This document shows, piece after piece, positions 3,101 through 43,234 of a stretch of 64,000 nucleotides of DNA. Both the position numbers and the translations under genes were made by a program. The notes beneath the pieces were generated by a model that saw only the letters and a program-made list of their open reading frames with translations, searched no databases and was not told where the DNA came from. Source of the DNA: Macrostomum hystrix (lineage: Eukaryota > Animalia > Platyhelminthes); assembly GCA_950097015.1 (NCBI GenBank), contig CATNEN010000005.1:5394001-5458000 (forward strand), in the 5' to 3' direction. Position 1 is the first letter of the stretch. Each line of letters opens with the position of its first letter.

Positions 3101-6100
3101 TTGATAACTCCGACAGCACAATGTTCGATTTCTTCGTGGGCCGCACTGGCGAATGGAAGCACTGGGAAAAAGAAATCGAGGAGTTTACGTATCCGAAGGA
3201 CAGTACGCCAGAGTACGGATCTATCCTAGTGCCAAATGTCGACAATGTGCGAACTGAGTTCCTGATTCGCACCATTCACAAACAGGGGAAGCAGGTGCTG
3301 CTCATAGGTGAGCAGGGCACTGCTAAAACCGTGCTCATCAACAAGTTCCTCGCCCAGTTCGACCCGGAAGTGCACATGAAGAAGGCGCTTAACTTTTCAA
3401 GCGCAACGACGCCGATGATGTTTCAGCGGACAATTGAGAGCTACGTTGACAAGCGCATGGGGTCCACCTTCGGACCGCCAGCTGGTCGAAAGATGACTGT
3501 CTTCATCGACGACATCAATATGCCGATGATCAACGAGTGGGGCGATCAGACAGCTAACGAAATTGTCCGTCAGCTAATGGAGACCTCCGGCTTCTACAGC
3601 TTAGAGAAGCCAGGCGAGTTCACGACGATTGTGGACCTGCAGATCGTTGGCGCCATGATTCATCCTGGAGGAGGCCGGAACGACATTCCCCAGCGCCTGA
3701 AGCGAAGATTCAACATCTTCAACTGCACCTTGCCGTCGAATTCTAGCATCGATAAGATTTTTAGCGCGATTGGCTGCGGTCACTTCTGCAAGGAGCGTGG
3801 ATTCCCTGAGGAGGTTCAGAGTCTCGTGGCGAGTCTGGTGCCGCTCACCAGACGCCTGTGGCAACAGACTAAGAACAAGATGCTGCCAACGCCGGCCAAG
3901 TTTCATTATGTTTTCAATCTGCGAGACCTCAGCCGCATCTGGCAGGGCATCATCAGCACGGATAGCGAAGTGGTCAACAGTCCGAGCGTCCTGCTCAGCC
4001 TCTGGAAGCATGAGTGCTGCCGAGTGATCTCTGACAGGTAATTATCACAAAAGTGGAACTAACTGATCATTCGCAAGGCTACATTTCACTGATAACGTCA
4101 TTCCAGATTCGTGAGCCCTGATGAGGCATCATGGTTCGAGAAAACCACTGTCAGGGTTGTTCGAGACGGCTTGAGTGAGGCCCACGTGCCCGCGGTGGAG
4201 GGCGCGGCATTTTTCGCCAATTTTCTCAGGTACTTAAAAGCGATTGCACGTTTTCGTCACAGCTTTGTAATCTTCTAAATCTAAAATACTTCAAGCATTT
4301 GAACTGCCTAAAATTTCAGAGATCTTCCCGAAGCCACAGGCGAGGAGCCAGAAGACGCGGTGATTGAGGTCCCAAGAGTCTACGAGCCAGTAAGTTCGAG
4401 TCCAGAAAATATTTTTTCAAGTTTCTGTAGACATTCTAAGGCATATTGGTCTATATTAAACTTGCAGATTCCATCGTTCGAGTTCCTGAGCGACAGGCTG
4501 GACAATTTCCTCGGACAATACAACGAGAACATTCGCGGCGCTGGCATGGAATTGGTCTTCTTCCGCGACGCGATGACTCACCTGCTGAAAATCTCGCGAA
4601 TCATCAGCACGCCAAGGGGCAACGCTCTGTTAGTTGGGGTTGGTGGCTCCGGCAAGCAGTCGCTGACCAGGCTTGCATCCTTCATCGCAGGCTACAATAC
4701 CTTTCAAATCACGCTCACGAGATCCTACAATGTCACAAACTTGATGGAGGATCTTAAGTTTCTGTATAGAACCGCTGGTCAGCAGGGCAAGGGAGTGACA
4801 TTTCTGTTCACTGACAACGAAATCAAAGACGAGAGCTTCCTCGAGTACCTCAACAATGTCCTCGCCTCTGGAATTGTGCCGAATCTGTTTCAGAGAGAAG
4901 AGATGGACGAAATCTGCCAAGAACTGGTTGCTGTTATGAAGAAGGAATATCCAAAACGACCACCAACCAACGAGAACCTGCAAGAGTACTTCTATTCCAG
5001 GACCAAGCAGAACCTGCACGTTGTACTTTGCTTCTCCCCAGTGGGTGAGAAGTTTCGCAGTCGAGCGCTGAAGTTTCCAGCTTTAATCTCCGGCTGCACA
5101 GTCGACTGGTTCCAGCGATGGCCTCGAGACGCGCTTATCGCTGTGGCTGACCGATTTCTGTCCAAGTTTCCGATTGACTGCTCGGATAGCATCAAGAGCC
5201 AGATAATTGAAACAATGGGCGTTGTCCACGACGGAGTGGCAAAAAGCTGTGGCGAATACTTTCATATGTACCGCCGTAACACTCACGTAACACCGAAGTC
5301 ATACCTCAGCTTCCTGCAAGGCTACAAGGAGATCTACACGCGCAAGCAGCTGCACTATGGCGACCTAGCAGAGAGAATGGACACTGGCCTGCAGAAGCTG
5401 CTTGAAGCTCAGGAGTCCGTAAGAATCTTGAGTTTAGAGCTGGTTGACAAGGAGAAAGAGTTGGCTGCCGCCAGCAAAGCGGCCGAGGAAGTGCTCAAGA
5501 TTGTCGCCATTGAACAGCGCGAAGCGCAGGAGATAAAAAACACCGTCCAGTCAGTAAAGGATCGTGCTCAGGCCCTTGTTGAGTCCATCGCTCAGGACAA
5601 GGCTTTCGCTGAGACCAAGCTGGAGGCCGCTCGACCCGCACTAGAAGCAGCCGCTGAAGCACTGAACACCATCAAACCTACGGACATCGCCACCGTGAGA
5701 AGGCTTGGCAGTCCGCCGCATCTGATCATGCGCATTATGGACTGCGTTCTGATTCTATTCCAGCGACGCTTGGACTCAGTTGAGAAGGATCCTGAAAGGC
5801 CATGCGTGAAGCCAAGCTGGGCTGAGTCACTGAAGCTCATGTCCAATGCTGCTTTCCTGGGTATGCTAATGCAGTTTGCGAAGGATTCCATTAATGAAGA
5901 GAGCATCGAGCTGCTCATGCCTTACCTAGAAATGGAGGACTACAACATGGACATGGCAAAGAGAGTCTGCGGCAACGTTGCCGGCCTGCTCTCCTGGACC
6001 AAGGCGATGCAGGAGTTCTTCTGGATCAACAAGGAGGTCGTGCCGCTGAAGGACAATCTAGCGAAGCAAGAAATTCGCCTAAAAAAGGCCAACGAGGACT

Positions 6101-9100
6101 TGATCGCTGCCCAAGCGACCCTCGACGAAAAGGAAGTCGAGTTAGCGAAGGTCCGGGCAGTCTACGAGGAGGCGATGCGTAAAAAGCAGATTCTTGAAGA
6201 CGATGCGGCAACTTGTCGCAGGAAGATGAGCGCCGCCGAGCAGCTGATCACCGGCCTGGCAGACGAGAAAGAGCGCTGGACTCGCCAGAGCAAAGAGTAC
6301 AGGTCTCAAATCGGCAGACTGGTTGGCGACGTCCTCATGGCCACCGCGTTTCTGTCCTACTCGGGCCCGTTCAACCAGGACTTCCGGCTGCTGCTGAACA
6401 AGAACTGGAGGAGACTCTTGCAGGAAAAGAAGATTCCGTACAGTGAAAGTCTCAACCTCATCGATATGCTAGTAGAAGCCACTACTATTGCAGAGTGGAA
6501 CCTGCAGGGTTTGCCAAACGATGAACTGAGCACAGAGAATGGCATCATTGTTACACAGGCAAGCCGCTATCCTCTGCTGATTGATCCACAGGGACAGGGA
6601 AAGATATGGATCAAAAATAAGGAGTCAGCTATGGATCTCCAAATCACAACGCTCAATCACAAGTACTTCCGACAGCATGTTGAAGACGCCCTGTCTCTGG
6701 GTCGGCCGCTTCTGATTGAAGACGTCGGTGAAGAGCTAGACCCTGCTCTGGACAACATTCTCGACAAGAATTTCATCAAGCAAGGCTCGAGAAAGAAAGT
6801 GAAAGTTGGCGACAAAGAGATCGATGTAATGTCCGGGTTTTACTTGTACATGACTACGAAGCTTCCGAACCCCGCCTATACGCCAGAAGTATACGCTAGG
6901 GCAAGCATTATCGACTTCACCGTGACAATGAAGGGCCTGGAGGATCAACTGCTCGGTCGTGTCATAAAGACTGAGAAATCTGATCTGGAAGATCAACGAG
7001 TACTCCTAATGGAGAATGTCACAAGGAACAACAAGCAAATGAAGGCATTGGAAGATACTCTCCTGTTCCGTCTCACTAGCGCGCAGGGTTCTTTGGTGGA
7101 TGATGAGAAGCTGATCAACGTTTTGAAGGAGACAAAAGTGACATCGAATGAAGTTCGACAGCAGATTGAAACTGCGAAGGAAACTCAGGAGCAAATTGCT
7201 GTTGCGAGAGAAGAATTCCGTCCTGTTGCTTCAAGAGGCTCTATTTTGTACTTTCTTATCACAGAGATGTCCATGGTCAATGTGATGTATCAGACGTCTT
7301 TAAGACAGTTCCTCGGTCTTTTTGACCTGTCGATGGAGTGCTCCACCAAATCACCGGTTAACTCTAAGCGCATTGCGAACATTATCGAATACATGACATC
7401 GTTTATATGGAGGTACATTATCCGAGGCCTGTACGAAATCGACAAGCTGACATTCACTCTTTTGCTGGCTTTAAAGATTGACATGCACTCAAAAAAGATT
7501 AAGCGAGAGGAATTTCAGACTCTAATCAAAGGCGGCGCGTCCCTCGATCTGAACGTTGTGCAACCAAAGCCTTACAAATGGATCCTTGACTCAACCTGGC
7601 TTAACCTTGTTGAGCTGTCGAATCTGCACCAGTTCTCCGGTATTCTAGACCAGATCTCTCGAAGCGAAAAGATCTGGAAGCAATGGTTTGACCAGGAGGC
7701 TCCCGAAGAGGCTTTAATACCTGACGGATACAGCGTCGCACTGGACTCATTCAGGCGCTTGCTGCTCATCAGGTCCTGGTGCCCGGACCGCACCATCTCT
7801 CAAGCTAAGAAGTACATTGCAGACAGTCTAGGAGAAAAATTCGCCGAAGGTGTCATTTTGGACGTAGAAGCAGTCTGGGAGGAGTCCGAGCCGCGAACGC
7901 CCATGGTTGGTCTGTTGTCGATGGGATCTGACCCGACGCCAAGCATCGAGCTACTAGCCAAGAAGCACAAAAAGGAATGCAGGATCATCTCCATGGGCCA
8001 GGGTCAGGAGGTTCACGCCAGGCGTCTGATGTCCAACTGCCTGCAGAATGGTGGCTGGGTGCTGCTGCAGAATTGCCATCTGTCGCTAGACTACGTCGTG
8101 GAATTAATGGACCATCTGCTTGATGCTGAAACAGTGCACGATGATTTTAGTCTGTGGGTCACCTCCGAAGTGCATCCGAAGTTCCCAATCGCTTTCCTCC
8201 AGCAGTCCATCAAGTTCACTAACGAGCCGCCTCAGGGAGTGAAGGCAGGCCTGAAGCGAACCTTCACCAGCTTCACTCAGGACTTCCTGGACATCAGCAA
8301 CATGCCGCAGTGGCGCCCGATGCTCTACGGTGTTGCCTTCCTGCACACAGTCGTCCAAGAACGTCGAAAGTTCGGCCCGATCGGTTGGAATATTCCCTAC
8401 GAGTTCAACACCGCTGACTTAAATGCAAGCATCCAGTTCGTGCAGAACCACCTTGACGATGTTGACCTCAAGAAGGGCGTCACCTGGAGTACCGTCAAAT
8501 ATATGCTTGGCGAGATCCAGTACGGCGGCAGGGTTACCGACGACTTCGACAAGATTTTGCTCAACACCTTCTGCAAGGTCTGGTTCTCCGAGAAGATGTT
8601 CGAGCCAACTTTCGAGTTCTACAAAGGCTACAGCATTCCGAAGTTCGCCAAGCTCAACGAGTACCTCGAGTATATTCAGAACCTGCCCGGATATGACACG
8701 CCGCAGGTGTTCGGCCTGCACGCCAACGCTGACATCAGCTACCAGGGCCGCACCACTAAGACCATTCTGGACTGCATCCTCAGCATTCAGCCGAAGGACT
8801 CTGGTGGCGGCTCAGGTGAAACTCGCGAGTCTGTGGTGTACAAGCAGGCCGAGGACCTCCTAGAGAAGCTGCCGAGTGACTATGTGCCGTTCGAGGTGCG
8901 TGAGCGGTTGAAGAAAATGGGCGAGCTGCAGCCGATGAACATCTTCCTCAGGCAGGAGGTGGACCGGATGCAGCGCGTCATCTCTGCCGTGAGAACCACG
9001 CTGACAGATCTCAAGCTGGCAATCGACGGCACCATCATCATGAACGAGAACCTGCGCGATGCTCTGGACTCCATGTACGACGCCAAGATACCGAAGGTGT

Positions 9101-9642
9101 GGAGCAAGATCTCCTGGGACTCTTCCGCTCTCGGATTCTGGTTCACGGAGCTGATCAACCGGAACCAGCAGTTCCACACCTGGGTGTTTTCCGGCCGACC
9201 CAACTGCTTCTGGATGACCGGCTTCTTCAATCCGCAGGGCTTCCTGACTGCCATGCGCCAGGAGGTGACGCGCGCCCACAAGGGCTGGGCGCTGGACAGC
9301 GTCCTGCTGCACAATGATGTCACCACGATGCACTTGCCAGATGTGAAGGAGCCGCCAATGGAGGGCGTTTACGTTCACGGCCTGTTCCTCGAGGGCGCCG
9401 GCTGGGACCGCAGAAACAGTCGCCTGACGGAGGCCCGGCCGAAGATCCTCAACGAGCAGCTGCCTGTGGTGCACATCTACGCCATCAACGAAGCAACCAA
9501 AGACGACAGGGTCTACCTGTGCCCGATCTACAAGAAGCCACGACGCACCGATCTTACCTACGTGGCTACAATCAGGCTCAAGACGGGCATGTCTGCCGAA
9601 CATTGGGTGATGCGCGGTGTGGCCCTTCTGTGCGACGTTTGA
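108..9642 (+). CDS. DNAH5: Axonemal outer-arm dynein heavy chain, DNAH5/DNAH8 class (5'-partial). Exons 108-491, 1908-2094, 2177-4037, 4107-4229, 4320-4389, 4468-9642
   Basis: AAA1 motifs [11 protein letters not shown] and HYDFGLRN; P-loops [24 protein letters not shown]; microtubule-binding domain [30 protein letters not shown]; C-terminus [12 protein letters not shown]. All five introns are GT-AG with matching phases. DNAH5 versus DNAH8 cannot be resolved without a tree. Confidence 0.95.
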
Positions 9643-18481: not shown

Positions 18482-21400
18482 ATGATTCAGACAACCAGCT
18501 GGTCAAGTGCGAAGTCAAAAAATGGCGAGAAGCAGAGCTTGCTCAAGTCTCAGCGACCATGCCTGGACTACGACTTTGGCGGACTTTGGCGACCAATTAG
18601 TGACATTGGGACCGGGGCAATCAAACCCGGCGACATTCTCCGAACGATCTACTACGGATTCTATCATGTCGCAGTCGTGGAATCCGTGCTGATTGAGAAG
18701 TCGAGCTCTTGCGCAGATACGGCGACTGTGCGCGTCATTCACATGGGATTCCCCAGTTGCCTGACCTTCTACAGGCGAGTGATGAGAGACGACGTGACGC
18801 TGAGCGCCAGCTCCAGCAGCAACTGGATCTATGAACTGCCAACTGAGCTGTGCTACCCACCGGAGACAGTAAGAATGCACGTTTATAGAGCTCTGAGTCA
18901 TGGCTCTGACAGCTCTTGGTGCTTTTCTTTGTCATGGAATGATGTCAATTATATACTGAATAGTATTATCGTCCCTTTTTAATGTGTTCCCTCGATTGTT
19001 GAAATGGGGAAGTTTGTACTCGTAGCTCAGAGCTTAGGCCTTCCGACGCAAGTTAGGTCGGGAGTTCAAATCCCAACCCTGAAGAAAAAACACTAAATTC
19101 CTTTGTTCTACGGTTGTCCTGGAGCTGAAAAGGGTTTTTTAATCAGCTGGAGTAGAAACTAGAGTGTGGATCTGGCGTCCCTCATTCTGTCCATGGACTG
19201 AACGGTTGTACGCAGCCTTTGGAAGCAGAACGCAATGGCTTCAGCTGGGACACTGGCTGCATGTACATCCGAGCTAGGTGGCCTCAAGCAATACTAAATT
19301 AGAATAACTAGGCTAACTGCTAGTCGTCATTGTATGTCATTTGTATCAATCTATCGATCTATCTTCATAAAAAATCGGTTGAATTTACACAAAGAGTGCA
19401 TTGTTCCAGACGCTGTCAAGGGCCCGAAGCCGTCTCAACGAGACCGAGAGCAATCTGTTTAGCGATCCGGCAGATTTCGCAATGTGGTGTAAAATTCCTT
19501 GCCGTTTTCAACGCCGCGACTGCTTTGTACCCATCTTGGCGCCATCACCGGACTGTGACGGGCACAGCTTGACAGTCGGAAGTCACGCCAACCTACCCGT
19601 AGCTCTGGGCCAGTCGATGCGACTGCACTTGATTGTGACGCAAGTGGATGAACTGGCTTCTTCGGGCAAGTCACCGCTGCTCTTGATTGGCTATCGTGCA
19701 GTGGCCGATCGCTACGACGCTCTGCAACCGCCGGAGCTGCACGTGGAGGATGTGACGCTCAAGGCGGACGCTTCACTTCGACGATATGCCAGTAAGACTG
19801 GCGCCTGCTGCGAGGATGGCACCTTCGACATCGGCGCTGCGAAGAGCGCTCTAGAACGTTACTCCGGCACTGGAGTAGCCAGCAAGTGCAACTTGCCTGA
19901 CTGGCTGGTGCTCAAGCTTCTTCTGATTGAGCAGAATCCTGAGTGGCTGCTTAATGCCTGTTCAGGAAACATGCATCAGGAGGTCGGGAGAAACCGGAAA
20001 CCAGCGTATACCACGACGAAGGCTAGAGATGCGCAGCCAGGCGACTTGCTGTTGTGCCTGCCAGATGGAGGTTCTGGCCTCGTGCTGGAGCCTTCGTCGG
20101 TGACATCCACGTCGGCGACGCTTTGCGTGGCTCGTTTCCGACCTAGACAGGCCATATCGGCTTTCGCTAGTCCTGGCCTTCACCTGGTTGATCGACGCCT
20201 TCTGCTAGATACGCGAGATCAGCGAGCAAAACTATGCGTGCACAACTGGGACACTGAGGATTGCGAGGTGCTTGGCGGTTCGCTGATTCGCACGCCGGAT
20301 TATTCGATCCGCAGAGTTGAGAACGGCGCCGAATTAACAGCTGGAATGCCAGTGTGTCTGAAGCGATTCTGTCACTACAAACATGCTGTCCTGACAGAGG
20401 TGGCATTGACCAACGTTCCAGGTAATGCGACTCTAAAACCTAGTCATTGTATATGCATATTTTGCATGTATTTTTTGTTAGATTTCGAACCTATCCTAAA
20501 ATGAATCCACCTGGGTTCAACGGGGCGAGTAATGTTAGTGCAGGCAGTAGGCCGACAACTAGTGTCGCGAAAATCAGAGCGAAATGTACCATTTGAACCC
20601 CCATTGCTTCGAAGACCTGCTTTGCGAAGACTTTTCAGGATCTTTGTAGGATATGTGTACGATCCCTGAGAAAACTACGTTTTACATAGTTAAGTCCTAA
20701 GACCAGATTACTATTTCTGTCCAACTAATAGTCTCTATTGACGACAGACAAAGTCCATATGTTCGGCCCCCACAGACGAAGCAATCTTGACGCTAGTTTA
20801 CTACGCCGTAAAGCCTGTGCGCAGTCTGCTGTTCATTCAACGCGTTGTGACGAGCGCCACGGCTCGAGTCAACCTAAAGAAGGACCGCCTGTTCCTTATT
20901 GAGTACCACGTAGCTGAAGACAGGCGAGTCACCGGAGAAGTAGCTGTTCAACGCGCTTTAAGTCGGCTAGGCGAGGCTGAGTACAACATCCAGTGGAACA
21001 GCTCGCGCGACCTGGTCCGCTGGTGCTGCACGACTCATCCGACTAACCGCGAGTTTTCTATGGCACCATTGCTGTCCGGAAGCTGCCTTGAGTCGCTGGT
21101 GGCACGACGTCAGATGCAAGTGATGTACAGTCGCGCTTTCGGTCTGTACTACCACGAAGTGATGATTCGAGAGTGCAAGCTGATCAGGAAAGGTGAAAGC
21201 TGCGATCTGCTCAGCTTTCGCTGCTACGAGTCAGCTGAGACAAATGTTGTCGTGCTCATCGACCGATTGGTCATGAAGGACTTGAAGCTGATCGGCCGAG
21301 TGTGCTACCTAGGTGAGACCAACTCGGAGGAGTCCGTGCGCAACAAGGCTAATCTACTTCTAGGAGCATCGTTCATCAGCGATGCTACCGATTCTCTCGT

Positions 21401-22319
21401 TGATGGTCGGCTGCTGTGCGAGTGGTTGAAGCTGAGCAGCGGACCTGGCCTGGAGGACCTGATGCACCTCATGATCGGCTCGGGCTACAATCCTCATGGG
21501 GTGCACAAGAAATTCGAGCTCTCCATTTCTACTGGCTCTGTGAAACCGTTGGATCATCTGGTGATTCGCCGGAATGGAAAGACGAAAGAGCACGCACTGT
21601 TGCTGGATTGGGATGGCGGTTCAGAGGCAACCTTCGTGCGGCTCGGCGTTCCGCCTGGCATGGAGAACTTTGTTGGACCGACGGAAACCAAAGGCTTCAT
21701 GCTGCTGCCGCGAAACCCGTGCTCGCCTGGAGTGTACGCCAAAATTCGCAACCGACCAATCGATGTCGACCTAATGGACAAACGCATGGCCTGCGTCAGC
21801 AACAGCGGCCACGCATACTACGACGCTTTCACCTACAACTGCGAACACATGTGCGGTCTGCTAGCCAATGGGCGAACCTACTCAGCCCAGTCTTCGTCAA
21901 TCGCCAATCGAGCAGCCAGTCTAGCTGTGAAGGCGGGCCGCTGTCTGTACCAGATACTGTTGCCACTGTCGAATCTATTCAACCTTCTGGGCTCATTTCA
22001 TTACTACATATCCGGAGGTGTCGCCCTGCTCTCGCTGCTGATTCTGGCAGCCATAGACTCTGGCGCCGTCTACCACGAAGCCAGACGTTTCGGCATGACG
22101 AGGCGCGAATTGCATCGACGCCTTGGTCAAATCAGCGTGCTCGCTTTATTCTCCGCCTTTGCTAGCGTGTTGGCCTTCCTGATTGGCCACTTCCTGGGCG
22201 ACCTGTACGACAAGTGGGCCCTAGAATTCATCTGCATTCTGATTGGCGTGCCGATGTCTCTGGCCGGTATTGTGCTCTGCCGACTAGCTGATTACTACAG
22301 GCACGTGCATATGCCCTGA
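18482..22319 (+). CDS. Tandem LRAT-like (permuted NlpC/P60, H-box/NC) repeat protein with C-terminal TM helices, ~980 aa. Exons 18482-18868, 19410-20421, 20776-22319
   Basis: Repeat 1: KPGDI...YHVAV...VIH...RARSRLNE...FAMWCK. Another repeat: YKHAVL...RALSRLGEAEYNIQWNS...VRWC. Last repeat: KPLDHL...EHALL...YDAFTYNCEHMC. Donors GTAAGA (18869) and GTAATG (20422) are in phase with the acceptors at 19409 and 20775. Three or four hydrophobic segments lie at the C-terminus. The start codon is tentative. Confidence 0.8.
19016..19330 (+). mobile_element. Second Pol III-type (tRNA-headed) SINE-like element in intron 1 of the LRAT-repeat gene
   Basis: TAGCTCAG (A-box-like) and GGAGTTCAAATCC (B-box-like) at tRNA-like spacing, but no complete cloverleaf. 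It is followed by ~250 bp of GC-richer non-coding body. It is single-copy in the window, so the boundaries are uncertain. Confidence 0.4.
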
Positions 22320-23622: not shown

Positions 23623-24333
23623 ATGGCAAGCGCAGTCAAATTCAGCGACATAATCAAGCAGTACGACGGTGAAGAGGATTTTTCGCGCTGGGCACAGAAG
23701 CTCGAACTCGTTGCCAAGCTCCAAAAAGTGAATGACCTGGCTGCTTTCATCCCACTATTTCTATCGGGAGGTGCGTTCGCCGTGTACCAGGCACTAAACG
23801 AGGAAAGCAAGTCGGACTACAAAGCTCTGAAAGCGGCTCTTACCTCAGCGTTCTGCCCAAACAAGTACAAAGCATACGACGAGTTCGTGTCACGCAGGCT
23901 CGGCCCTGGGGAGTCCGTGGACGTTTTTCTCGCGGATCTCACGAGGCTTGCACGCCAAGTGGACGAGATCCCCGGGGAAGAATGGATCAAATGCGCATTC
24001 GTCCGCGGGCTTCCAGCAACCGTCAGTCAGCAGCTGATCGCTTCCTGCTCTCTAAAAGAGCTCGAACTCCATGAACTAGCGGAGAAAGCTAGAAACTTAA
24101 CGATCAGTCGCGAGTCCTGCTGTGTTGTCTCGAGCGCAGGAAATGCGCGAAGCGCTGGAAAGTTCGCCCCACGCAACAAAGTGATGTCGTGCTACTCGTG
24201 CGGCAAGGAGGGCCATGTGAGCAAAGAGTGCATGGAACGCAACCGAGCGAATCAAGGTTGTTTTGTTTGTGGAAAAGCGGGACATGTCGCTGCTCGATGC
24301 CCGCAGCGCGCCGATTTTCAAAAAAACGAGTGA
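23623..24333 (+). CDS. gag: Retrotransposon Gag (236 aa) with two CCHC zinc knuckles
   Basis: ATG at 23623 just after the LTR; CYSCGKEGHVSKEC and CFVCGKAGHVAARC. Confidence 0.92.
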   Translation: MASAVKFSDIIKQYDGEEDFSRWAQKLELVAKLQKVNDLAAFIPLFLSGGAFAVYQALNEESKSDYKALKAALTSAFCPNKYKAYDEFVSRRLGPGESVDVFLADLTRLARQVDEIPGEEWIKCAFVRGLPATVSQQLIASCSLKELELHELAEKARNLTISRESCCVVSSAGNARSAGKFAPRNKVMSCYSCGKEGHVSKECMERNRANQGCFVCGKAGHVAARCPQRADFQKNE

Positions 24334-24367
24334 TGGAAGCGCGGAATGTTTGCGCCAACGGGCTTCC
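24321..24367 (+). promoter_or_regulatory. Putative -1 ribosomal frameshift signal
   Basis: Slippery heptamer A-AAA-AAC (24321-24327) in the gag frame; pol is in the -1 frame. A stem GGAAGC (24335-24340)/GCTTCC (24362-24367) begins 7 nt downstream. Confidence 0.7.
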
Positions 24368-27300
24368 TTGTGCACCGGCGCACCTACCATCGTTAAGTGT
24401 TCATGTTAATAGTTTGGTCGTTACTGCTTTAGTAGATACTGGTTGTTCGCGGTCCATCGTTTCTTCACGAGTTACTGGAGTTAAAAAACGTCCCGTTCAC
24501 GAGAGGGTCACGATGATGAATGGTGACTCAGCAGAATGTGAATGGGAGGCTGACGTTGCTTTGTCTGTTCGAGGCCACCAATTACCAGTGCTGCGATGTA
24601 TCGTTATGGACATCCTTCCTGGGTTCGATTTGCTGCTTGGGATGGATGCTATCAGCCGATTGGGCGGTGTCTCTGTGAAGCGAGATTGCCGCAGTGTCCG
24701 CTTCGGTATTGAAGAGCAGTCATTAGCGCTGGAGACTGCTGCGGTAGCCAAGGCTTTCACAAAACCAAAGGCGGAGTCACCTGTGAGCTGTCCGGCAGGA
24801 GAGGTCGAGTCACCTGTGAGCTGTCCGGCAGGAGAGGTCGAGTCACCTGTGAGCTGTCCGGCAGGAGAGGTCGAGTCACCTGTGAGCTGTCCGGCAGGAG
24901 AGGTCGAGTCACCTGTGAGCTGTCCGTCAGGAGAGGTCGAGTCACCTGTGAGCTGTCCGACAGGAGAGGTCGAGTCACCTGTGAGCTGTCAGGCAGGAGA
25001 GGTCGAGTCACCTGTGAGCTGTCCGGCAGGAGAGGTCGAGTCACCTGTGAGCTGTCCGGCAAGAGGAGCGAGGCTTGCGAAAAATACTTTAACCGAGGCG
25101 TGCCTGGTGCTTGAGGAAAAAGACTTCTCTGCTAAGTTTATCGATGGAGAGTGGACAGTGGCATGGAAGTGGCTGGATGAGGCCCCACTACTGTCAAATA
25201 CGATAGCTCAATACCGAGTCCCACCAGAGGCGGTAGGCGAGTATGAGTCAGAGATAAAAGACTGGATTCAGCGAGGTTGGCTGCTACCGTTCGAAGGTGA
25301 CAGTGACGGCGTCATCCCTCTGATGGCAGTGGTGCAGACCAACAAAGCAAAGGTGCGGCCTGTACTCGACTATCGCGAGTTGAACCAGTACGTGTCAAGC
25401 CACACCGCCGAAAGCGTCGTGTGCGGCGCCAAGCTCCGGGCCTGGCGGCGGCTCGGTGAGAATGCGAGTATCATCGACCTGCGGAAGGCCTACCTACAAC
25501 TGCGATTGGACCCCAGTCTCTGGCGCTACCAAGTAGTGAGGTTCAAAGGCCGCCGTTACTGTCTCACCCGGTTAGGATTCGGACTCAACGTGGCGCCAAA
25601 AATTATGACGGCGGTTGTGAACAAAGTCCTGTCGATGGAAGACGACGTGCGTGAGGCCACGGACTTTTACATTGACGACATTATTGTGAACAATAGCAAG
25701 ATTCCGAATGAACGCGTAACTGGGTTGCTTGCCCGGTTCGGGCTAGAAGCCAAGCCTCCTGAGAGCCTCATTGGGGGCCGCGTGCTCGGCCTCCGCGTCT
25801 ACCGTCGAGAGGATGGGGTCATTTGCTGGAAACGAGACAATGTCCTCTCTCAGTTGAAAGGTCCAGCAACACGACGGCAACTATTCTCCTGGTGCGGCCA
25901 GCTAGTAGGCCATTTCCCCGTCGCCGCATGGCTGCGTGTCGCATGCAGCTACTTGAAGCGGGTCACCAGCACAATCGCGTGGGACGCTATCGTCAGCGAG
26001 TCTGCCATGCGGATCGCCCAAGAAATCAGCGAAATGGTCCAGGAACGAGATCCTGTCGCTGGGGTGTGGACCGTTGACGAGACTTCGCGCTGTCGCGTCT
26101 GGTGCGACGCCAGCAGCATCGCCATTGGAGCCGTCATCGAAATTGGTGGCGTAATCGTGGAGGACGCCTCGTGGTTGCGAAAACAAGACGACGCTGCGCA
26201 CATCAATCTTGCCGAACTTGAGGCGGTCCTCAAGGGTATCAACCTTGCCCTCGCTTGGGGTACGAGGAAAGTTGAAGTGTTGACTGATTCTGCAACCGTG
26301 CACGGCTGGCTCCAGTCTTTGATTGTCGGCGATAAGCCCGTGCGAGTCAAAGGTCTCGGTGAAGCTCTGGTTCGGAAACGGCTATCATTAATCCGAGACA
26401 CGGCGTCGGAGTGCGAGCTCGAGCTACTGACATCGCTGGGGCCATCTTCAGCAAACAAGGCAGACGCACTGACGCGAGTACCGCAACAGTGGCTGCGCCA
26501 GCGGCCCTTCTGTGCAGTGGCGCTGCGCCCCGTTGACATGGATCTCCGTGCGTGCCACGAGAAGCACCACTTCGGGGTGGACAGGACGCTCTACCTGGCC
26601 AAATTGTGCTTCCCTGAACGTGAGGTACTGCGTGAAGAGGTTGAGCGCATCGTTGCAAACTGCATCCGATGCAAGTCCGTAGACCCTGCGCCGATGGTTT
26701 GGGACCATGGCAGACTCGAGGTGGATGCAAACTGGTGGCGCTTGGCCTGCGACGTGACCCACTTTAAGGACGACCGCTATCTGTCCATTGTTGACTGCGG
26801 GCCGAGCAGATTCTCGCTGTGGCGAAAACTCACCGACGAGCGGACAGCGTCAATTACCGGGATACTCGTGCAGGTGTTCCGAGAGCGGGGCCCTCCCTGG
26901 CAGCTGCTTCTCGACAATTCACCGACCTTCCGCTCCGCTGAGGTCCGTGCGTTTTGTGAGGCTTGGGGAGTGCAGCTCCTCTTCCGTTGCGCTCACCGGC
27001 CGTCAGGCAACGGAATAGTCGAGCGCAATCATCGGACGATTAAGCGGATGGCAGCCAGAACCGGAAAGGACGTACTGGAAATGGTGTTCTGGTACAACAT
27101 GGCTCCAAAGGATGGCACTCGCAAGGACAGCGTGCCCAGCAGAATGGTCAGCACCTATGACTGGAAGCCGCCAACTGTGTCTCTCCCTGAGGCCTTGGAG
27201 ACCTTGGAGGCAAACCCACGCCCCACGCCCACCCTGCCAGTGGGAACAGAAGTGTTTGTTAAACCGCCGGCCGTCAGATGCACCGACGAGTGGCCTAGGG

Positions 27301-27488
27301 GACGCGTGACGGGCCAGGGACAAGGGTCTACGGTGGAGGTCGATGGCCTTCCCCGTCACGTAGCTGACGTCCGCCCGGCACCAGACACGCAACCGCAGCC
27401 TCCTGGGGTGGAGCGAGCTGTCGAGCGGGATGCCGAACCACGACGGTCTAATAGGGTGAAGTCGGCGCCGGTCCGTTACGAACCTTGA
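24328..27488 (+). CDS. pol: Retrotransposon Pol (protease, RT, RNase H, integrase), intact
   Basis: PR LVDTGCS; RT IDLRKAYLQL, FGLNVAP, YIDD; RNase H WCDAS, NLAELEA, LTDS, ADALTR; integrase HHCC plus D (ACDV), D (LDNS), E (VERNHR). No stop codons. Confidence 0.95.
24774..25061 (+). repeat. In-frame 33-bp minisatellite in pol (ESPVSCPAGEV, about 8.7 copies)
   Basis: GAGTCACCTGTGAGCTGTCCGGCAGGAGAGGTC tandem units between the protease and RT domains. Confidence 0.95.
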
Positions 27489-28770: not shown

Positions 28771-30606
28771 ATGGAATCTGACGAGTTTAACCTTCTACCC
28801 CTAAGTGATTCCGAGAAAGGTACGTTTTATTGTTTTATACTTAAAGAAAACTTATATTTCTAACGTTTGTTTACTTTTTTAGTTTTACTAATTTTATCTA
28901 CTTTTCTTTATATATATATTCAAGCATCACGATGAAGTTATATATTTATTTAGGTAAAACTGTTTATAAAAATGTTGTATTTAGTGGAGCATATCTAAAA
29001 ATCAATTGTTTAAACTATTAACTAAATAAAACTGCAAGAGATAAAATTTGAGTTATATTGCAAATTTAGTTTTCCTTACTTCTGACTGATAATTAGGTTT
29101 ATTATTTCGTAGCAAAAAGTATACCTAATGTTAGCCAGAAATAGGAAACCATTGATGTTGAAAATGAACTTATGTTTTGGAGACCTTGCAAAAGCAAACA
29201 TCTTTTTCAAATGGCTCAAAGTGAAAAGTGTAATATTATCAATATTTTCATAAACAGATCCTTTAAAACATTTTTTGTAATTTATGGCAATTACAACAAC
29301 TAATATCAAATATTGTGTAGTTAATTATCTGGCTAACAAGTAATTGCCTTATAAAGGTAGTGTAAGAAGTAGGGTAGCTATTATTGATAAGTATATGGAT
29401 ATTACTTATTATGCAGGACTAATGTAATTTTGTAATAGCCAAAAATAGATAAGTAACACATCAAAACATCAAATACCTATTAGCCTTACTTTTGCTTTAC
29501 AAGTCGATTTTTTGTTTTATTTTTTACATTTTATATATCTTTACACCTTAAATATTTTCTTTATGTTGGCCTATGTGTAGCTACTTGTATATTTCAGTGT
29601 CTTGCTCAAATAATATTCATTGTGTTACATTCAAATGTGGGATTTCTTGATTTGTAGCTTAAATTTCCAACCCCATGGATTTAGCTAGGCTAAAATCACA
29701 CATTTGATTCCTTAAAATTACACATTTGTTATTCTGTTCTATAAAGTAACAAATTTTTGGTTTATTCTTACTGTACTTTTTGGCTGAAGCAATTTTCCTT
29801 CTGGTTATTTTTTCTATGACAGCTCTACTAGCCGAAGTTAAGGAAGCTGTTCTTACAGCGGAAAATAGTGGAGCATTCGACGATTGCACGCCCATCCCAG
29901 CTGCTCCCGCCGCTGCTGCCACTTCAACTGGCACCGCCGCCGCCATTGGCTGGGAGCACCCGGCTGTGCGCTTTTTGGCTTCAACTTTTGTTAGAAAATG
30001 TTTGACTCAATTGGAGGTGCTGAGAGCTCATGGTGTGGCCTACTCACTCAAGGAGCTGGTCTGGTTTGTACTGAATCTAGAACGCGATCCAAGCTACATG
30101 CTGGGTCTGACGGGATCCGATTGCAGTGAGGAACAGGTGGGTGAAACTATTTTGGGAGAAACAAAAAATTAATATGTGAATGTGAATGTGGAGCAAGTTT
30201 AGCAAATTTAGATTGAAAAAAAATTGCACTCGAACAGGTTCGCTCTCTGGCTGACCGCTTGCCACTTTCGCCAGCCATCTCCGTGCCGCCAGAGCCTTTG
30301 CTTCTCCTGCCCGTCGGTGCAGCCTGCGGCGTTGCCGGATCTCTCGACGACGAAGTCTCCTTGCAGTCGTCGACAATGGACGCATCTACTGGAACTATTG
30401 GAGCCGCTGATTGGCCAACAGTTCGCGAGGCACTCGATCGACTGCGCGAACTAGTCGACGCTGCAGCCGATGATGACAGACGTCGGCCAAGGCGCCGCGG
30501 CTTGCCAGCGGAGCGTCCGGTGCTGACTGTCACTCTGCCGGACCTGCCGGAGTTGCCACCGTGTCCTATGGATCCCGTGGGATCCGGGGATCAGGGCGAG
30601 GAATAG
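28771..30606 (+). CDS. Hypothetical protein, ~243 aa. Exons 28771-28819, 29823-30136, 30238-30606
   Basis: Phase-consistent GT-AG model (phase 1, then phase 0) giving MESDEFNLLPLSDSEK|ALLAEVKEAV...WEHPAVRFLASTFVRKCLTQLEVLR...SEEQ|VRSLADRLP...; the exons are GC-rich against AT-rich introns. Exon 1 is tentative. Confidence 0.6.
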
Positions 30607-30610
30607 GGGA

Positions 30611-33600
30611 AGAGTGACATCCGGGTGGTGTGACATTGGAGTGATATGGAGTGACATTCATATTCATATTCATATGGAGTGACATTCAAATGGAGTGACA
30701 TTCAAATGGTGTGACATTCAAATTAGAGTGACATTCAAACGGAGTGACATTCAAATTAGAGTGACATTCAAATGGAGTGACATTCAAATCGAGTGACATT
30801 AAAATTAGATTGAAATTCAAATGGAGTGACATTCAAATTAGAGTGACATTCAAATGGAGTGACATTAAAATTAGATTGAAATTCAAATGGAGTGACATTA
30901 AAATTAGAGTGACATTCAAATGGAGTGACATTCAAACGGAGTGACATTCAAATTAGAGTGAAATTCCAATGGAGTGACATTCAAATTAGAGTGAAATTCA
31001 AATGGAGTGACATTCAATTAGAGTGAAATTAAAATTAGATTGAAATTCAAATGGAGTGACATAAAATTAGAGTGACATTCAAATGGAGTGACATTCAAAT
31101 TAGAGTGAAATTCAAATAGAGTGAAATTCAAATGGAGTGAAATTCAAATTAGAGTGACATTCAAATTAGAGTGACATTCAAATGGAGTGACATTCAAATG
31201 GAGTGACATTCAAATGGAGTGACAATCAAACGGAGTGACATTCAAATTAGAGTGACATTCAAATTAGAGTGACATTCAAATGGAGTGACATTCAAATGGA
31301 GTGACATTCAAATCGAGTGACATTAAAATTAGATTGAAATTATAATGGAGTGACATTCAAATTAGAGTGAATTCAAATGGAGTGACATAAAAATTAGAGT
31401 GACATTCAAACGGAGTGAGATTCAAATTAGAGTGACATTCAAATGGAGTGACATTCAAATGGAGTGAAATTCAAATTAGAGTGAAATTCAAACGGAGTGA
31501 GATTCAAATTAGAGTGACATTCAAATTAGAGTGACATTCAAATTAGAGTGACATTCAAATTAGAGTGACATTCAAATTAGAGTGACATTAAAATTAGATT
31601 GAAATTCAAATGGAGTGACATTCAAATTAGAGTGACATTCAAATTAGAGTGACGTTCAAATGGAGTGACATTCAAATGGAGTGACATTCAAATGGAGTGA
31701 CATTAAAATTAGATTGACGTTCAAACGGAGTGACATTCAAATTAGAGTGACATTCAAATGGAGTGACATTCAAATTAGAGTGACATTCAAATTAGAGTGA
31801 CATTCAAATGGAGTGACATTCAAATTAGAGTGACATTCAAATTAGAGTGACATTCAAATTAGAGTGACATTCAAATTAGAGTGACGTTCAAATGGAGTGA
31901 CATTCAAATGGAGTGACATTCAAATGGAGTGACATTCAAATGGAGTGACATTCAATTGGAGTGAAATTCAAATTAGATTGAAATTCAAATGGAGTGACAT
32001 AAAATTAGAGTGACATTCAAATGGAGTGACATTCAAATTAGAGTGAAATTCAAATGGAGTGAAATTCAAATGGAGTGAAATTCAAATTAGAGTGACATTA
32101 AAATTAGAGTGACATTCAAATGGAGTGACATTCAAATGGAGTGACATTCAAATGGAGTGACAATCAAACGGAGTGACATTCAAATTAGAGTGACATTCAA
32201 ATTAGAGTGACATTCAAATGGAGTGACATTCAAATGGAGTGACATTCAAATCGAGTGACATTAAAATTAGATTGAAATTATAATGGAGTGACATTCAAAT
32301 TAGAGTGAATTCAAATGGAGTGACATAAAAATTAGAGTGACATTCAAACGGAGTGAGATTCAAATTAGAGTGACATTCAAATGGAGTGACATTCAAATGG
32401 AGTGAAATTCAAATTAGAGTGAAATTCAAACGGAGTGAGATTCAAATTAGAGTGACATTCAAATTAGAGTGACATTCAAATTAGAGTGACATTCAAATTA
32501 GAGTGACATTAAAATTAGATTGAAATTCAAATGGAGTGACATTCAAATTAGAGTGACATTCAAATTAGAGTGACGTTCAAATGGAGTGACATTCAAATGG
32601 AGTGACATTCAAATGGAGTGACATTAAAATTAGATTGACGTTCAAACGGAGTGACATTCAAATTAGAGTGACATTCAAATGGAGTGACATTCAAATTAGA
32701 GTGACATTCAAATTAGAGTGACATTCAAATGGAGTGACATTCAAATTAGAGTGACATTCAAATTAGAGTGACATTCAAATTAGAGTGACATTCAAATTAG
32801 AGTGACGTTCAAATGGAGTGACATTCAAATGGAGTGACATTCAAATGGAGTGACATTCAAATGGAGTGACATTCAATTGGAGTGAAATTAAAATTAGATT
32901 GAAATTCAAATGGAGTGACATAAAATTAGAGTGACATTCAAATGGAGTGACATTCAAATTAGAGTGAAATTCAAATGGAGTGAAATTCAAATGGAGTGAA
33001 ATTCAAATTAGAGTGACATTCAAATTAGAGTGACATTCAAATGGAGTGACATTCAAATGGAGTGACATTAAAATGGAGTGACAATCAAACGGAGTGACAT
33101 TCAAATTAGAGTGACATTCAAATTAGAGTGACATTCAAATGGAGTGACATTCAAATGGAGTGACATTCAAATCGAGTGACATTAAAATTAGATTGAAATT
33201 ATAATGGAGTGACATTCAAATTAGAGTGAATTCAAATGGAGTGACATAAAAATTAGAGTGACATTCAAACGGAGTGAGATTCAAATTAGAGTGACATTCA
33301 AATGGAGTGACATTCAAATGGAGTGAAATTCAAATTAGAGTGAAATTCAAACGGAGTGAGATTCAAATTAGAGTGACATTCAAATTAGAGTGACATTCAA
33401 ATTAGAGTGACATTCAAATTAGAGTGACATTCAAATTAGAGTGACATTAAAATTAGATTGAAATTCAAATGGAGTGACATTCAAGTTAGAGTGACATTCA
33501 AATTAGAGTGACGTTCAAATGGAGTGACATTCAAATGGAGTGACATTCAAATGGAGTGACATTAAAATTAGATTGACGTTCAAACGGAGTGACATTCAAA

Positions 33601-34101
33601 TTAGAGTGACATTCAAATGGAGTGACATTCAAATTAGAGTGACATTCAAATTAGAGTGACATTCAAATGGAGTGACATTCAAATTAGAGTGACATTCAAA
33701 TTAGAGTGACATTCAAATTAGAGTGACATTCAAATTAGAGTGACGTTCAAATGGAGTGACATTCAAATGGAGTGACATTCAAATGGAGTGACATTCAAAT
33801 GGAGTGACATTCAAATGGAGTGACATTCAAATCGAGTGACATTCAAATGGAGTGACATTAAAATGGAGTGACATTCAAATTAGATTGACGTTCAAACGGA
33901 GTGACATTCAAATTAGAGTGACATTCAAATGGAGTGACATTCAAATTAGAGTGACATTCAAATTAGAGTGACATTCAAATTAGAGTGACATTCAAATTAG
34001 AGTGACATTCAAATTAGAGTGACATTCAAATTAGAGTGACATTCAAATTAGAGTGACATTCAAATTAGAGTGACATTCAAATTAGAGTGACATTCGGGTG
34101 G
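30611..34101. repeat. Satellite array of 16/17-bp units GAGTGACATTCAAATG / GAGTGACATTCAAATTA (~3.5 kb) with ~930-bp higher-order structure
   Basis: Continuous tandem array; rare variants recur at intervals of 938 and 921 bp. Confidence 0.97.
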
Positions 34102-34504
34102 ATTGAGCCCAAAGTCGTGCTCGTCAGTTTTAAAATTAAGCCTAGTATACTACTTATTAGCTGTACAGTGACGTTCAGAAAAAATTGTGGTGCAAAACTG
34201 AATTAACAGGTAAGCTTACATGCGCGCGTTTTTAGTTGCAGTATAAGTTTCGTATCTATGTGCAATCAGCTTATATCTACAGTACTAGCTCATTTGTTAA
34301 TTTACTCTTAATCCATGACTTATATTATTGCTTTTGCATGTTTTTTGCGTTAGAATTCGAGTTTTTATGTAACGTTTGCGGTTTGAAATATACTGGTCTA
34401 GAGATAATTATGCAGACATTTTTCCTCCACAGTTTTCGACGTTTAGATTTTATTCTAAATAATATCGAATATATTTTTACCCATTTTTTAATCTAAAATA
34501 TAAA

Positions 34505-37500
34505 ATGTCATTTCCTAGCTAGTTGGTCTTCATGGAGTGTCATTTCCTAGCTAGTTGGTCTTGATGGAGTGTCATTTCCTAGCTAGTTGGTCTTCATGGA
34601 GTGTCATTTCCTAGCTAGTGGGTCTTCATGAAGTGTCATTTCCTAGCTAGTTGGTCTTCATGGAGTGTCATTTCCTAGCTAGTTGGTCTTCATGGAGTGT
34701 CATTTCCTAGCTAGTTGGTCTTCATGAAGTGTCATTTCCTAGCTAGTTGGTCTTCATGGAGTGTCATTTCCTAGCTAGTTGGTCTTCATGGAGTGTCATT
34801 TCCTAGCTAGTTGGTCTTCATGGAGTGTCATTTCCTAGCTAGTTGGTCTTCATGAAGTGTCATTTCCTAGCTAGTGGGTCTTCATGGAGTGTCATTTCCT
34901 AGCTAGTGGGTCTTCATGAAGTGTCATTTCCTAGCTAGTTGGTCTTCATGGAGTGTCATTTCCTAGCTAGTTAGTCTTCATGAAGTGTCATTTCCTAGCT
35001 AGTTGGTCTTCATGGAGTATCATTTCCTAGCTAGTCTTTGTGAAGTGTCATTTCCTATAGCTAGTTGGTCTTCATGGAGTGTCATTTCCTAGCTAGTTGG
35101 TCTTCATGGAGTGTCATTTCCTAGCTAGTTGGTCTTCATGAAGTGTCATTTCCTAGCTAGTCTTTGTGAAGTGTCATTTCCTATAGCTAGTTGGTCTTCA
35201 TGGAGTGTCATTTCCTAGCTAGTTGGTCTTCATGGAGTGTCATTTCCTAGCTAGTTGGTCTTCATGGAGTGTCATTTCCTAGCTAGTTGGTCTTCATGAA
35301 GTGTCATTTCCTAGCTAGTTGGTCTTCATGGAGTGTCATTTCCTAGCTAGTTGGTCTTCATGGAGTGTCATTTCCTAGCTAGTTGGTCTTCATGGAGTGT
35401 CATTTCCTAGCTAGTTGGTCTTCATGAAGTGTCATTTCCTAGCTAGTTGGTCTTCATGGAGTGTCATTTCCTAGCTAGTTGGTCTTCATGGAGTGTCATT
35501 TCCTAGCTAGTTGGTCTTCATGAAGTGTCATTTCCTAGCTATTTGGTCTTCATGGAGTGTCATTTCCTAGCTAGTTGGTCTTCATGAAGTGTCATTTCCT
35601 AGCTAGTTGGTCTTCATGAAGTGTCATTTCCTAGCTAGTGGGTCTTCATGGAGTGTCATTTCCTAGCTAGTTGGTCTTCATGGAGTGTCATTTCCTAGCT
35701 AGTGGGTCTTCATGGAGTGTCATTTCCTAGCTAGTTGGTCTTCATGGAGTGTCATTTCCTAGCTAGTTGGTCTTCATGAAGTGTCATTTCCTAGCTAGTT
35801 GGTCTTCATGGAGTGTCATTTCCTAGCTAGTTGGTCTTCATGGAGTGTCATTTCCTAGCTAGTTGGTCTTCATGGAGTGTCATTTCCTAGCTAGTTGGTC
35901 TTCATGAAGTGTCATTTCCTAGCTAGTTGGTCTTCATGGAGTGTCATTTCCTAGCTAGTGGGTCTTCATGAAGTGTCATTTCCTAGCTAGTTGGTCTTCA
36001 TGGAGTGTCATTTCCTAGCTAGTTGGTCTTCATGGAGTGTCATTTCCTAGCTATTTGGTCTTCATGGAGTGTCATTTCCTAGCTAGTGGGTCTTCATGAA
36101 GTGTCATTTCCTAGCTAGTTGGTCTTCATGGAGTGTCATTTCCTAGCTAGTTGGTCTTCATGAAGTGTCATTTCCTAGCTAGTTGGTCTTCATGAAGTGT
36201 CATTTCCTAGCTAGTTGGTCTTCATGGAGTGTCATTTCCTGGCTAGTTGTTCTTCATGGAGTGTCATTTCCTAGCTAGTTGGTCTTCATGGAGTGTCATT
36301 TCCTAGCTAGTTGGTCTTCATAAAGTGTCATTTCCTAGCTAGTTGGTCTTGATGGAGTGTCATTTCCTAGCTAGTTGGTCTTGATGGAGTGTCATTTCCT
36401 AGCTAGTTGGTCTTCATGGAGTGTCATTTCCTAGCTAGTTGGTCTTCATGGAGTGTCATTTCCTAGCTAGTTGGTCTTGATGGAGTGTCATTTCCTAGCT
36501 AGTTGGTCTTCATGGAGTGTCATTTCCTAGCTAGTGGGTCTTCATGAAGTGTCATTTCCTAGCTAGTTGGTCTTCATGGAGTGTCATTTCCTAGCTAGTT
36601 GGTCTTCATGAAGTGTCATTTCCTAGCTAGTTGGTCTTCATGAAGTGTCATTTCCTAGCTAGTTGGTCTTCATGGAGTGTCATTTCCTAGCTAGTTGGTC
36701 TTCATGGAGTGTCATTTCCTAGCTAGTTGGTCTTCATGGAGTGTCATTTCCTAGCTAGTTGGTCTTCATGAAGTGTCATTTCCTAGCTAGTGGGTCTTCA
36801 TGGAGTGTCATTTCCTAGCTAGTGGGTCTTCATGAAGTGTCATTTCCTAGCTAGTTGGTCTTCATGGAGTGTCATTTCCTAGCTAGTTAGTCTTCATGAG
36901 TGTCATTTCCTAGCTAGTTGGTCTTCATGGAGTATCATTTCCTAGCTAGTCTTTGTGAAGTGTCATTTCCTATAGCTAGTTGGTCTTCATGGAGTGTCAT
37001 TTCCTAGCTAGTTGGTCTTCATGGAGTGTCATTTCCTAGCTAGTTGGTCTTCATGAAGTGTCATTTCCTAGCTAGTCTTTGTGAAGTGTCATTTCCTATA
37101 GCTAGTTGGTCTTCATGGAGTGTCATTTCCTAGCTAGTTGGTCTTCATGGAGTGTCATTTCCTAGCTAGTTGGTCTTCATGGAGTGTCATTTCCTAGCTA
37201 GTTGGTCTTCATGAAGTGTCATTTCCTAGCTAGTTGGTCTTCATGGAGTGTCATTTCCTAGCTAGTTGGTCTTCATGGAGTGTCATTTCCTAGCTAGTTG
37301 GTCTTCATGGAGTGTCATTTCCTAGCTAGTTGGTCTTCATGAAGTGTCATTTCCTAGCTAGTTGGTCTTCATGGAGTGTCATTTCCTAGCTAGTTGGTCT
37401 TCATGGAGTGTCATTTCCTAGCTAGTTGGTCTTCATGAAGTGTCATTTCCTAGCTATTTGGTCTTCATGGAGTGTCATTTCCTAGCTAGTTGGTCTTCAT

Positions 37501-39960: not shown

Positions 39961-40348
39961 CTAGTCTTTGTGAAGTGTCATTTCCTATAGCTAGTCTTCG
40001 TGAAGTGTCATTTCCTATAGCTAGTCTTCGTGAAGTGTCATTTCATATAGCTAGTCTTCGTGAAGTGTCATTTCATATAGCTAGTCTTCGTGAAGTGTCA
40101 TTTCCTATAGCTAGTCTTCGTGAAGTGTCATTTCCTATAGCTAGTCTTCGTGAAGTGTCATTTCCTATAGCTAGTCTTCGTGAAGTGTCATTTCCTATAG
40201 CTAGTCTTCGTGAAGTGTCATTTCCTATAGCTAGTCTTCGTGAAGTGTCATTTCCTATAGCTAGTCTTCGTTAAGTGTCATTTCCTATAGCTAGTCTTCG
40301 TTAAGTGTCATTTCCTATAGCTAGTCTTCGTGAAGTGTCATTTCCTAG
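39961..40348. repeat. 30-bp derivative array GTGTCATTTCCTATAGCTAGTCTTCGTGAA
   Basis: Homogeneous 30-bp units contiguous with the 32-bp array. Confidence 0.92.
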
Positions 40349-43123: not shown

Positions 43124-43234
43124 TTTCGATCTGTCAAAATCGAACTTCATTTGTAAATGGTGCGTTTACAAATTGCTCTGGAAAATATTCTAGATTAACT
43201 TTGATTTTTCTCTCCCCTACCGCCGCTCTCTCAT

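Follow-up and report, generated by a model that had tools for sequence, protein, structure and literature searches.

A gene on the forward strand of a contig of the flatworm Macrostomum hystrix encodes a predicted protein of 980 residues in which five complete LRAT-like units and a half unit precede three or four transmembrane (TM) helices. The gene lies at 18482-22319 of the stretch of DNA that we analysed (the window, 64,000 nucleotides of contig CATNEN010000005.1), and its units are named D1 to D6, D3 being the half unit. Only D6, the unit next to the helices, carries the nucleophile cysteine of the LRAT family. We regard four things as established: the gene model, the common descent of the units, their pattern of catalytic residues, and the presence of membrane helices. 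The product is probably, though by no means assuredly, a PLAAT-type membrane-anchored acyl-enzyme of Macrostomum in which D6 is live and the five non-catalytic sister units serve as built-in partners.

Gene model and homology of the six units

Three open reading frames (ORFs) on the + strand lie behind the gene (18482-18982, 19401-20504 and 20787-22319) and can be joined at 18868/19410 and 20421/20776, as a first-pass annotation of this DNA had proposed. The spliced frame comprised 2943 nt (387 + 1012 + 1544), or 980 codons and a stop, and intron 1 translated in frame held 5 stops. We aligned the exons separately, one by one, to a protein of M. lignano (P0010; UniRef A0A1I8JKI0, 979 residues). 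Exon 1 matched residues 9-135 (57% identity), exon 2 residues 136-467 (57%) and exon 3 residues 469-979 (67%), and the Asp codon split by intron 2 (G/AC) has its counterpart in Asp468. A survey of the same genome, which covered an assembly of 220 Mb in 42 contigs, revealed an intronless 1005-residue paralogue (L002:43-3057, contig C11) that was contiguous over both junctions. The GT-AG sites and the junction-exact colinearity with these two proteins bear out the proposed splicing. That we are dealing with three separate genes, or with a pseudogene in decay, is very improbable, since no frame is interrupted, the introns have canonical splice sites, there is a single start and a single stop, and both junctions agree exactly with the orthologue. 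The predicted gene is thus one three-exon Macrostomum gene, orthologous to the M. lignano Mlig023781 group, and the model is supported as far as homology allows.

Table 1. Coordinates in the window of the exons, introns, LRAT-like units and membrane helices of the gene. The hhalign values are from comparison with a profile of LRAT-like domains from outside Macrostomum; KD, Kyte-Doolittle hydropathy.
Feature	Position	Strand	Description
Exon 1	18482-18868	+	387 nt, 129 codons; ATG-started ORF; N-terminal tail and D1 strands
Intron 1	18869-19409	+	541 nt; donor GTAAGA at 18869, acceptor CAG
Exon 2	19410-20421	+	1012 nt, 337 codons and 1 base; D1 helices, D2, D3, first D4 strands
Intron 2	20422-20775	+	354 nt; GTAATG...CAG
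Exon 3	20776-22319	+	1544 nt, 2 bases, 513 codons and TGA; remaining D4, D5, D6, TM block
D1	18584-18868 and 19410-19514	+	LRAT fold, split by intron 1; hhalign 99.9%, E 3e-32, 114 columns
D2	19518-19970	+	putative degenerate full-length LRAT-like unit; hhalign 88.6%, E 2.6e-6, 109 columns
D3	20001-20273	+	putative half unit, PGD strand and sheet without the helix pair; hhalign 92.2%, E 5.9e-7, 64 columns
D4	20292-20421 and 20776-21047	+	LRAT fold, split by intron 2; hhalign 99.8%, E 2.2e-28, 121 columns
D5	21048-21485	+	putative degenerate full-length unit; hhalign 85.3%, E 5.9e-6, 112 columns
D6	21495-21881	+	sole unit with Asn-Cys-Glu-His (NCEH); hhalign 95.0%, E 3.6e-8, 111 columns
Membrane block	21942-22277	+	hydropathy scan, P0010 model
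Weaker helix, ahead of the three strong ones	21942-21998	+	mean KD 1.25
Strong TM helix 1	22014-22070	+	mean KD 1.96
Strong TM helix 2	22131-22187	+	mean KD 2.39
Strong TM helix 3	22221-22277	+	mean KD 2.31

The Pfam LRAT model (PF04970) exceeded its curated threshold once in the window, at D4, the unit of exon 3 that reads WNSSRDL (score 28.4 bits, cut-off 24.3 bits, E 2.2e-6). The same model scored 35 bits on the orthologue P0010 and 56 bits (E 5.4e-15) on the paralogue L002, where the three matched stretches are units 1, 4 and 6; D6 of L002 gave E 3.3e-7. D2 had no Pfam match. Within the family, hhalign tied D1 to D4 alone, so an outside profile was needed. A search of 1.84 billion representative proteins with a Macrostomum-family profile gave 1109 hits (E <= 0.001), many of which had 4-10 matched stretches; the outside profile consisted of 248 LRAT-like domains cut from non-Macrostomum proteins among the best 150 hits. 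Six family blocks, delimited on an AlphaFold2 (AF2) model of P0010, were then compared with this profile by hhalign.

All six blocks aligned to the outside profile (Table 1). The TM block, used as a control, gave 0.1% and E 0.66, and the reversed blocks together with 20 column shuffles of D2, D3, D5 and D6 gave at most 3.8% and E >= 0.011. For the comparison of D2, D3 and D5 the shuffled controls gave E >= 0.12 (E >= 0.13 for D2). The elements followed the expected order of PGD strand, H-box strand, IHY strand, RA..G helix and NCEHF..WC helix, which is the permuted topology of the LRAT family, with the His-bearing sheet first and the nucleophile helix last. The D3 alignment spanned only the N-terminal half of the LRAT profile, and this unit ends in a conserved LCVHN...DC..LGG stretch. 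Hidden Markov models (HMMs) of D2, D3 and D5 matched bivalve proteins, with 17 of 20 matches on independently defined LRAT-type domains, many at the identical start residue; the D3 HMM matched the starts of such domains, for example in P0065 (independent E-value 3e-8).

One could suppose that the LRAT domains are only D1, D4 and D6, and that small beta or beta/alpha modules of other origin, such as Tudor-, SH3- or Agenet-like linkers, make up D2, D3 and D5. We consider this improbable, because D2 and D5 align full-length and in order, all three units lie far above their shuffled controls, their HMMs match the bivalve domains in register, and the predicted order of secondary structure is the same as in PLAAT. 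The assignment of D2, D3 and D5 as LRAT-like remains a putative one, drawn from the profile-profile comparison (85-92%, E ~1e-6) and the predicted topology, without a strong fold match. The Pfam, per-unit hhalign and shuffled-control results agree with the first-pass count of five to six tandem LRAT-like domains in about 980 residues, among which it had described repeats 2, 3 and 5 as more degenerate. The six units thus appear to descend from the circularly permuted NlpC/P60 (LRAT/PLAAT) fold, D1 to D5 having lost the nucleophile and D3 also the helices. A duplicated triple (D1-D2-D3 = D4-D5-D6) was not supported (D2 vs D5 0.6%, D3 vs D6 0.7%).

Two further features of the gene were observed. 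The linkers after D1 (~19490-19560) and D4 (~21020-21060) are conserved and rich in Cys and His, reading WC...S.HR.DC.VP and then GDH or GH in the first strand of the next unit; this pattern was invariant in 8 of 8 family members and might form a metal site between adjoining units. Intron 1 contains a tRNA-like fragment (19018-19085) that has GGGAGTTCAAATCCC as a good T-arm and TAGCTCAGAG resembling a D-arm. Neither ARAGORN nor Rfam called this fragment or any RNA gene in the whole window. The fragment is not an obvious short interspersed nuclear element, because a DNA search of its own genome returned this single copy.

Catalytic residues, membrane block and predicted structure

LRAT-family enzymes (PF04970) are circularly permuted, use a Cys-His-His triad and work at the membrane-water interface (PMC10318531). 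We read the hhalign columns on the window sequence and found the sole Cys at the NCEHF position in D6 (codon TGC, 21840-21842), within Asn-Cys-Glu-His. D6 also has the H-box His (21591-21593) and carries Arg (21639-21641) at the second-His position, the third of the triad. It therefore has at most a Cys-His pair, and a full triad was found in none of the six units. D1, in which both His are present (18665-67, 18740-42), carries Ala (19470-72) in place of the Cys. In D4 the Cys position holds Ser (21003-05), the second His is Tyr, and a conserved His lies one residue off the catalytic column. D5 retains the first H-box His (21153-55), has Gly at the Cys position, and carries a family-invariant Cys four residues past it (21417-19). 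D2 aligned too weakly for the Cys position to be called, and D3 is without the nucleophile helix. The first-pass annotation had placed the catalytic Cys in the last unit only, had noted both His but no NCEHF in repeat 1, and had read FVR at the second catalytic His/Asn position of D6; each of these readings agrees with the columns. For repeat 4 it had reported a replaced Cys, which stood, and one kept His, which falls off the catalytic column in an ambiguous register.

The hydropathy scan identified three clear TM helices and a weaker one after D6, in keeping with the three or four expected, and detected no hydrophobic stretch or signal peptide at the N-terminus. The helices start ~35 residues past NCEH, so that, as in PLAAT/HRASLS proteins, a C-terminal membrane anchor follows the catalytic domain. 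An Arg-rich loop between the second and third helices obeys the positive-inside rule only if all four helices cross the membrane, which would make both termini and the six units cytosolic. The TM block is conserved in Macrostomum only; its similarity to bivalve TM blocks was almost nil (best E ~1e-3 among 161 proteins).

The AF2 model of P0010 was obtained from a 19-sequence alignment (predicted local distance difference test, pLDDT, 70.9; predicted template modelling score, pTM, 0.61). It showed the PLAAT element order, ~5 strands and then 2-3 helices, in D1, D2, D4, D5 and D6 (for D2, 5 strands, a helix, a strand and 2 helices), only strands by DSSP in D3, and four long helices at the C-terminus. 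A second model, of D5-D6 from window positions 21039-21902 inside exon 3, reached pLDDT 83.2 and pTM 0.83, and this pTM suggests that the two units form one compact body. The structural check suggested in the first pass thus returned the expected element order in five units. With Foldseek, neither model had a match at E <= 1e-3; PLAAT chains appeared at E 0.05-0.25 for the full-length P0010 model and not at all for D5-D6. The VIA results for the 979-residue P0010 model were dominated by helical-bundle matches to the TM block, a PDB sequence search with exon 3 came back blank, and the ESM Atlas contained no usable match for the TM block or D2-D3. A word search that used only exon 3 was likewise empty, which its length filter accounts for, the relatives having 980 or more residues. 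The fold evidence is strong for D1 and D4, and for D5-D6 weak but family-specific.

The D5-D6 model also raised a tentative idea, which we judge unlikely, that D5 and D6 exchange helices with each other inside the one chain, with the NCEH helix of D6 on the D5 sheet and the dead helices of D5 on the D6 sheet. Permuted-type relatives (PLAAT4, C92, YiiX, TseH and Aichivirus 2A) aligned to the model over ~residues 16 to 280, and canonical helix-first NlpC/P60 enzymes all aligned to 92-204, the D5 helices plus the D6 strands; these ranges come from low-Z alignments. The Cys helix is known to be exchangeable between protomers, and in an HRASLS3/LRAT chimera each active site is completed by this helix from the adjacent protomer (PMC5133064). 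LRAT and this chimera, a domain-swapped homodimer (PDB 4q95), belong to the same family as the Macrostomum protein, and the alignment ranges hint at a comparable exchange within one chain; LRAT itself, unlike the Macrostomum tandem chain, pairs two identical single-domain chains, which have helices at the N- and C-termini. If the idea holds, a single chain would mimic the domain-swapped dimer by which a PLAAT-type hydrolase becomes an LRAT-type acyltransferase. The array would then amount to a dimer fixed in one polypeptide, and the retained His of D5 could be the partner of the Cys.

Relatives in Macrostomum and bivalves

The close relatives of the gene all came from Macrostomum lignano (52-67% identity), where the family has ten or more clusters; two of these clusters, P0003 and P0004 (~1380 residues), have an additional D1-D2-D3 set at the N-terminus. 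At least five further family loci (L002-L006) were found in the M. hystrix assembly. L002 and L003 lie ~8 kb apart on opposite strands (C11:1482431-1493082), and L006 is on contig C38. L004:1168-3660 (-) and L005:1003-3459 (-), on contig C39, are long frames of ~820-830 residues with D1-D5 and a D6-like unit that lacks NCEH and reads DSAVGW and DDAASW, respectively. A hydropathy scan of the M. lignano clusters that match these two loci (P0007 and P0008) detected no TM helix, and L004 and L005 look like fully non-catalytic, probably soluble members of the family. Every full-length member that bears NCEH has two or more predicted TM helices directly after it, while the NCEH-less L004, L005, P0007 and P0008 have none, so loss of NCEH goes with loss of the helices. 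As side observations, L002 is intronless where the window gene has two introns, and L003 contains one in-frame TAG, which makes it a pseudogene or marks an intron.

Outside Macrostomum, the named multi-unit matches were all from bivalves (Potamilus, Mytilus, Mercenaria, Sinanodonta and Ruditapes), whose proteins the family profile matched in 4-10 stretches. Like the Macrostomum protein, the bivalve proteins combine several units with a single NCEH domain adjoining a multi-helix membrane block. Their order is the opposite one: the NCEH domain lies near the N-terminus, 2-4 TM helices follow within ~60 residues, and then come 2-9 Cys-less units. The order is reversed and yet NCEH directly precedes the TM block, which argues that a module of NCEH domain plus TM block has been kept with the array on its other side. 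Among the Cys-less units of these mostly bivalve relatives (P0009 and P0011-P0152), 156 of 192 domains have Ser where the nucleophile Cys would be, and the two H-box His are retained in 170 and 173 of the 192. Such Ser-bearing units may represent a Ser-His-His variant rather than dead domains, and the Macrostomum units are more degenerate.

Database entries of the family are automatic predictions, named 'hypothetical', 'uncharacterized' or 'LRAT domain-containing', with a few rule-based names (SET or Agenet-like). Our literature search found no paper on tandem or multiple LRAT domains, apart from a vitamin A review that applies these words to a dimer, and none that names the M. lignano gene ids. 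The anatomy drawn in the first-pass annotation (one spliced gene, its units, a single Cys, an odd third triad position and TM helices) has stood. Its remark that the architecture is not known to have been characterised also held for the literature; in public databases, however, the architecture is already present as unreviewed, unnamed predictions from M. lignano and several bivalves. The architecture is thus not unseen, and the family is unstudied.

The window is animal DNA with GC-poor spacers and spliced genes. A dynein heavy chain is represented at 2164-9642 (+) by a pair of long ORFs that cover its AAA3-AAA6, stalk and C-terminal portions (Pfam E as low as 1e-99). Immediately downstream of the LRAT-like gene, at 24189-27488 (+), lies the pol frame of a long terminal repeat retrotransposon, 1099 residues with protease, reverse transcriptase, RNase H-like, DUF7047 and integrase domains. 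Two stretches, 30000-44000 and 50000-56000, have an extreme strand composition, with a GC skew of up to 0.80 (52-54 kb) and an AT skew of down to -0.41 (36-38 kb); these are probably satellite arrays.

A probable membrane-anchored acyl-enzyme with built-in partners

LRAT and PLAAT enzymes act in membrane remodelling, in the formation of N-acyl lipids and retinyl esters, and in organelle dismantling. To our knowledge, every member that has been studied has one domain and needs a membrane anchor for its activity, and LRAT must also dimerise; the first-pass statement that known LRAT, PLAAT and FAM84 proteins have one domain holds for characterised proteins. PLAAT1-5 (HRASLS, H-rev107, AdPLA and TIG3) have a single domain in ~160-280 residues and one C-terminal helix. 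In contrast, the Macrostomum protein has 980 residues and six units, five of them extra and Cys-less, with 3-4 helices and Arg in place of the third triad His, and its sequence identity to PLAAT1-5 is 12-16%. LRATD1 and LRATD2 (FAM84A/B) and the picornavirus 2A H-box/NC proteins are single domains that are not known to be catalytic, soluble or within a viral polyprotein, whereas the Macrostomum protein fuses dead domains to a live-looking one.

What the enzyme does, on which substrate, and how the dead units contribute we infer from what is known of the family. On the reading we favour, the membrane block would hold D6 at the cytosolic face of the membrane, where its Cys-His pair would accept, in thioester linkage, an acyl chain of a glycerophospholipid. 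D6 would then hand the acyl group to water, as a phospholipase A, or to another lipid, as an acyltransferase. The non-catalytic units could act in cis by shielding or completing the active site, by binding lipid or protein, or by mimicking an LRAT-type dimer. Constraint on the dead units is indicated by their identity to the M. lignano orthologue, which equals that of the live one (53-69% for D1-D5, 57% for D6). The first-pass suggestion that dead units feed or regulate a terminal acyltransferase or lipase in lipid remodelling or defence is plausible; the one indirect sign in its favour is that paralogues without NCEH are also without TM helices, and no result pointed to defence.

Several points weigh against the favoured reading. 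Its third triad His is missing, being Arg in this orthologue pair and Thr in most paralogues, and is His in no Macrostomum member. The window D6 alone scored 12.8 bits (E 0.15) with Pfam LRAT, which is below threshold. In D2 and D4 the H-box alignment could be shifted by one residue, and the alignments behind the folding were shallow, with 16-19 sequences. The whole protein could accordingly be a pseudoenzyme, a membrane-anchored scaffold or binding platform of the kind proposed for LRATD/FAM84, in which NCEH is kept by descent. The triad position and the Pfam score both suit this alternative, as do the identity of D6 to the M. lignano orthologue, which is no better than that of the dead units (57% against 53-69% for D1-D5), and the persistence of the NCEH-less L004 and L005 as long open frames. 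We nevertheless hold it to be unlikely: Asn-Cys-Glu-His and the H-box His are retained in the gene, its orthologue and the NCEH-bearing paralogues at ~25% overall identity, and papain-like enzymes are known to function with a varied or missing third residue (PMC10318531). Moreover, NCEH and the TM helices are lost together, which suggests a role for the motif in proteins that retain their membrane anchor.

A different chemistry was also considered, in which D6 is a peptidase or deconjugating enzyme (an NlpC/P60-PPPDE amidase or isopeptidase) that acts on a membrane protein or a lipid-anchored protein and not on phospholipids. The NCEH region of a paralogue matched Peptidase_C97/PPPDE weakly in Pfam (E 0.004-0.04), and the VIA list for D5-D6 contained many peptidoglycan peptidases and a deSUMOylase. 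However, the C97 matches cover only ~18 residues around the Cys, LRAT was always the best family match, and the NCEHF signature with an immediate membrane anchor is a trait of PLAAT and LRAT proteins. We assign this alternative a low probability.

For the M. hystrix genome, the results annotate an expanded, lineage-restricted gene family. The fusion of a live domain to a series of conserved dead copies occurs in two spiralian groups, with the order reversed between them, and makes it possible to ask what purpose dead LRAT folds serve, with thioester shielding, completion of an active site in trans and partner binding as candidate roles. It may thereby give a handle on the unexplained LRATD/FAM84 pseudoenzymes.

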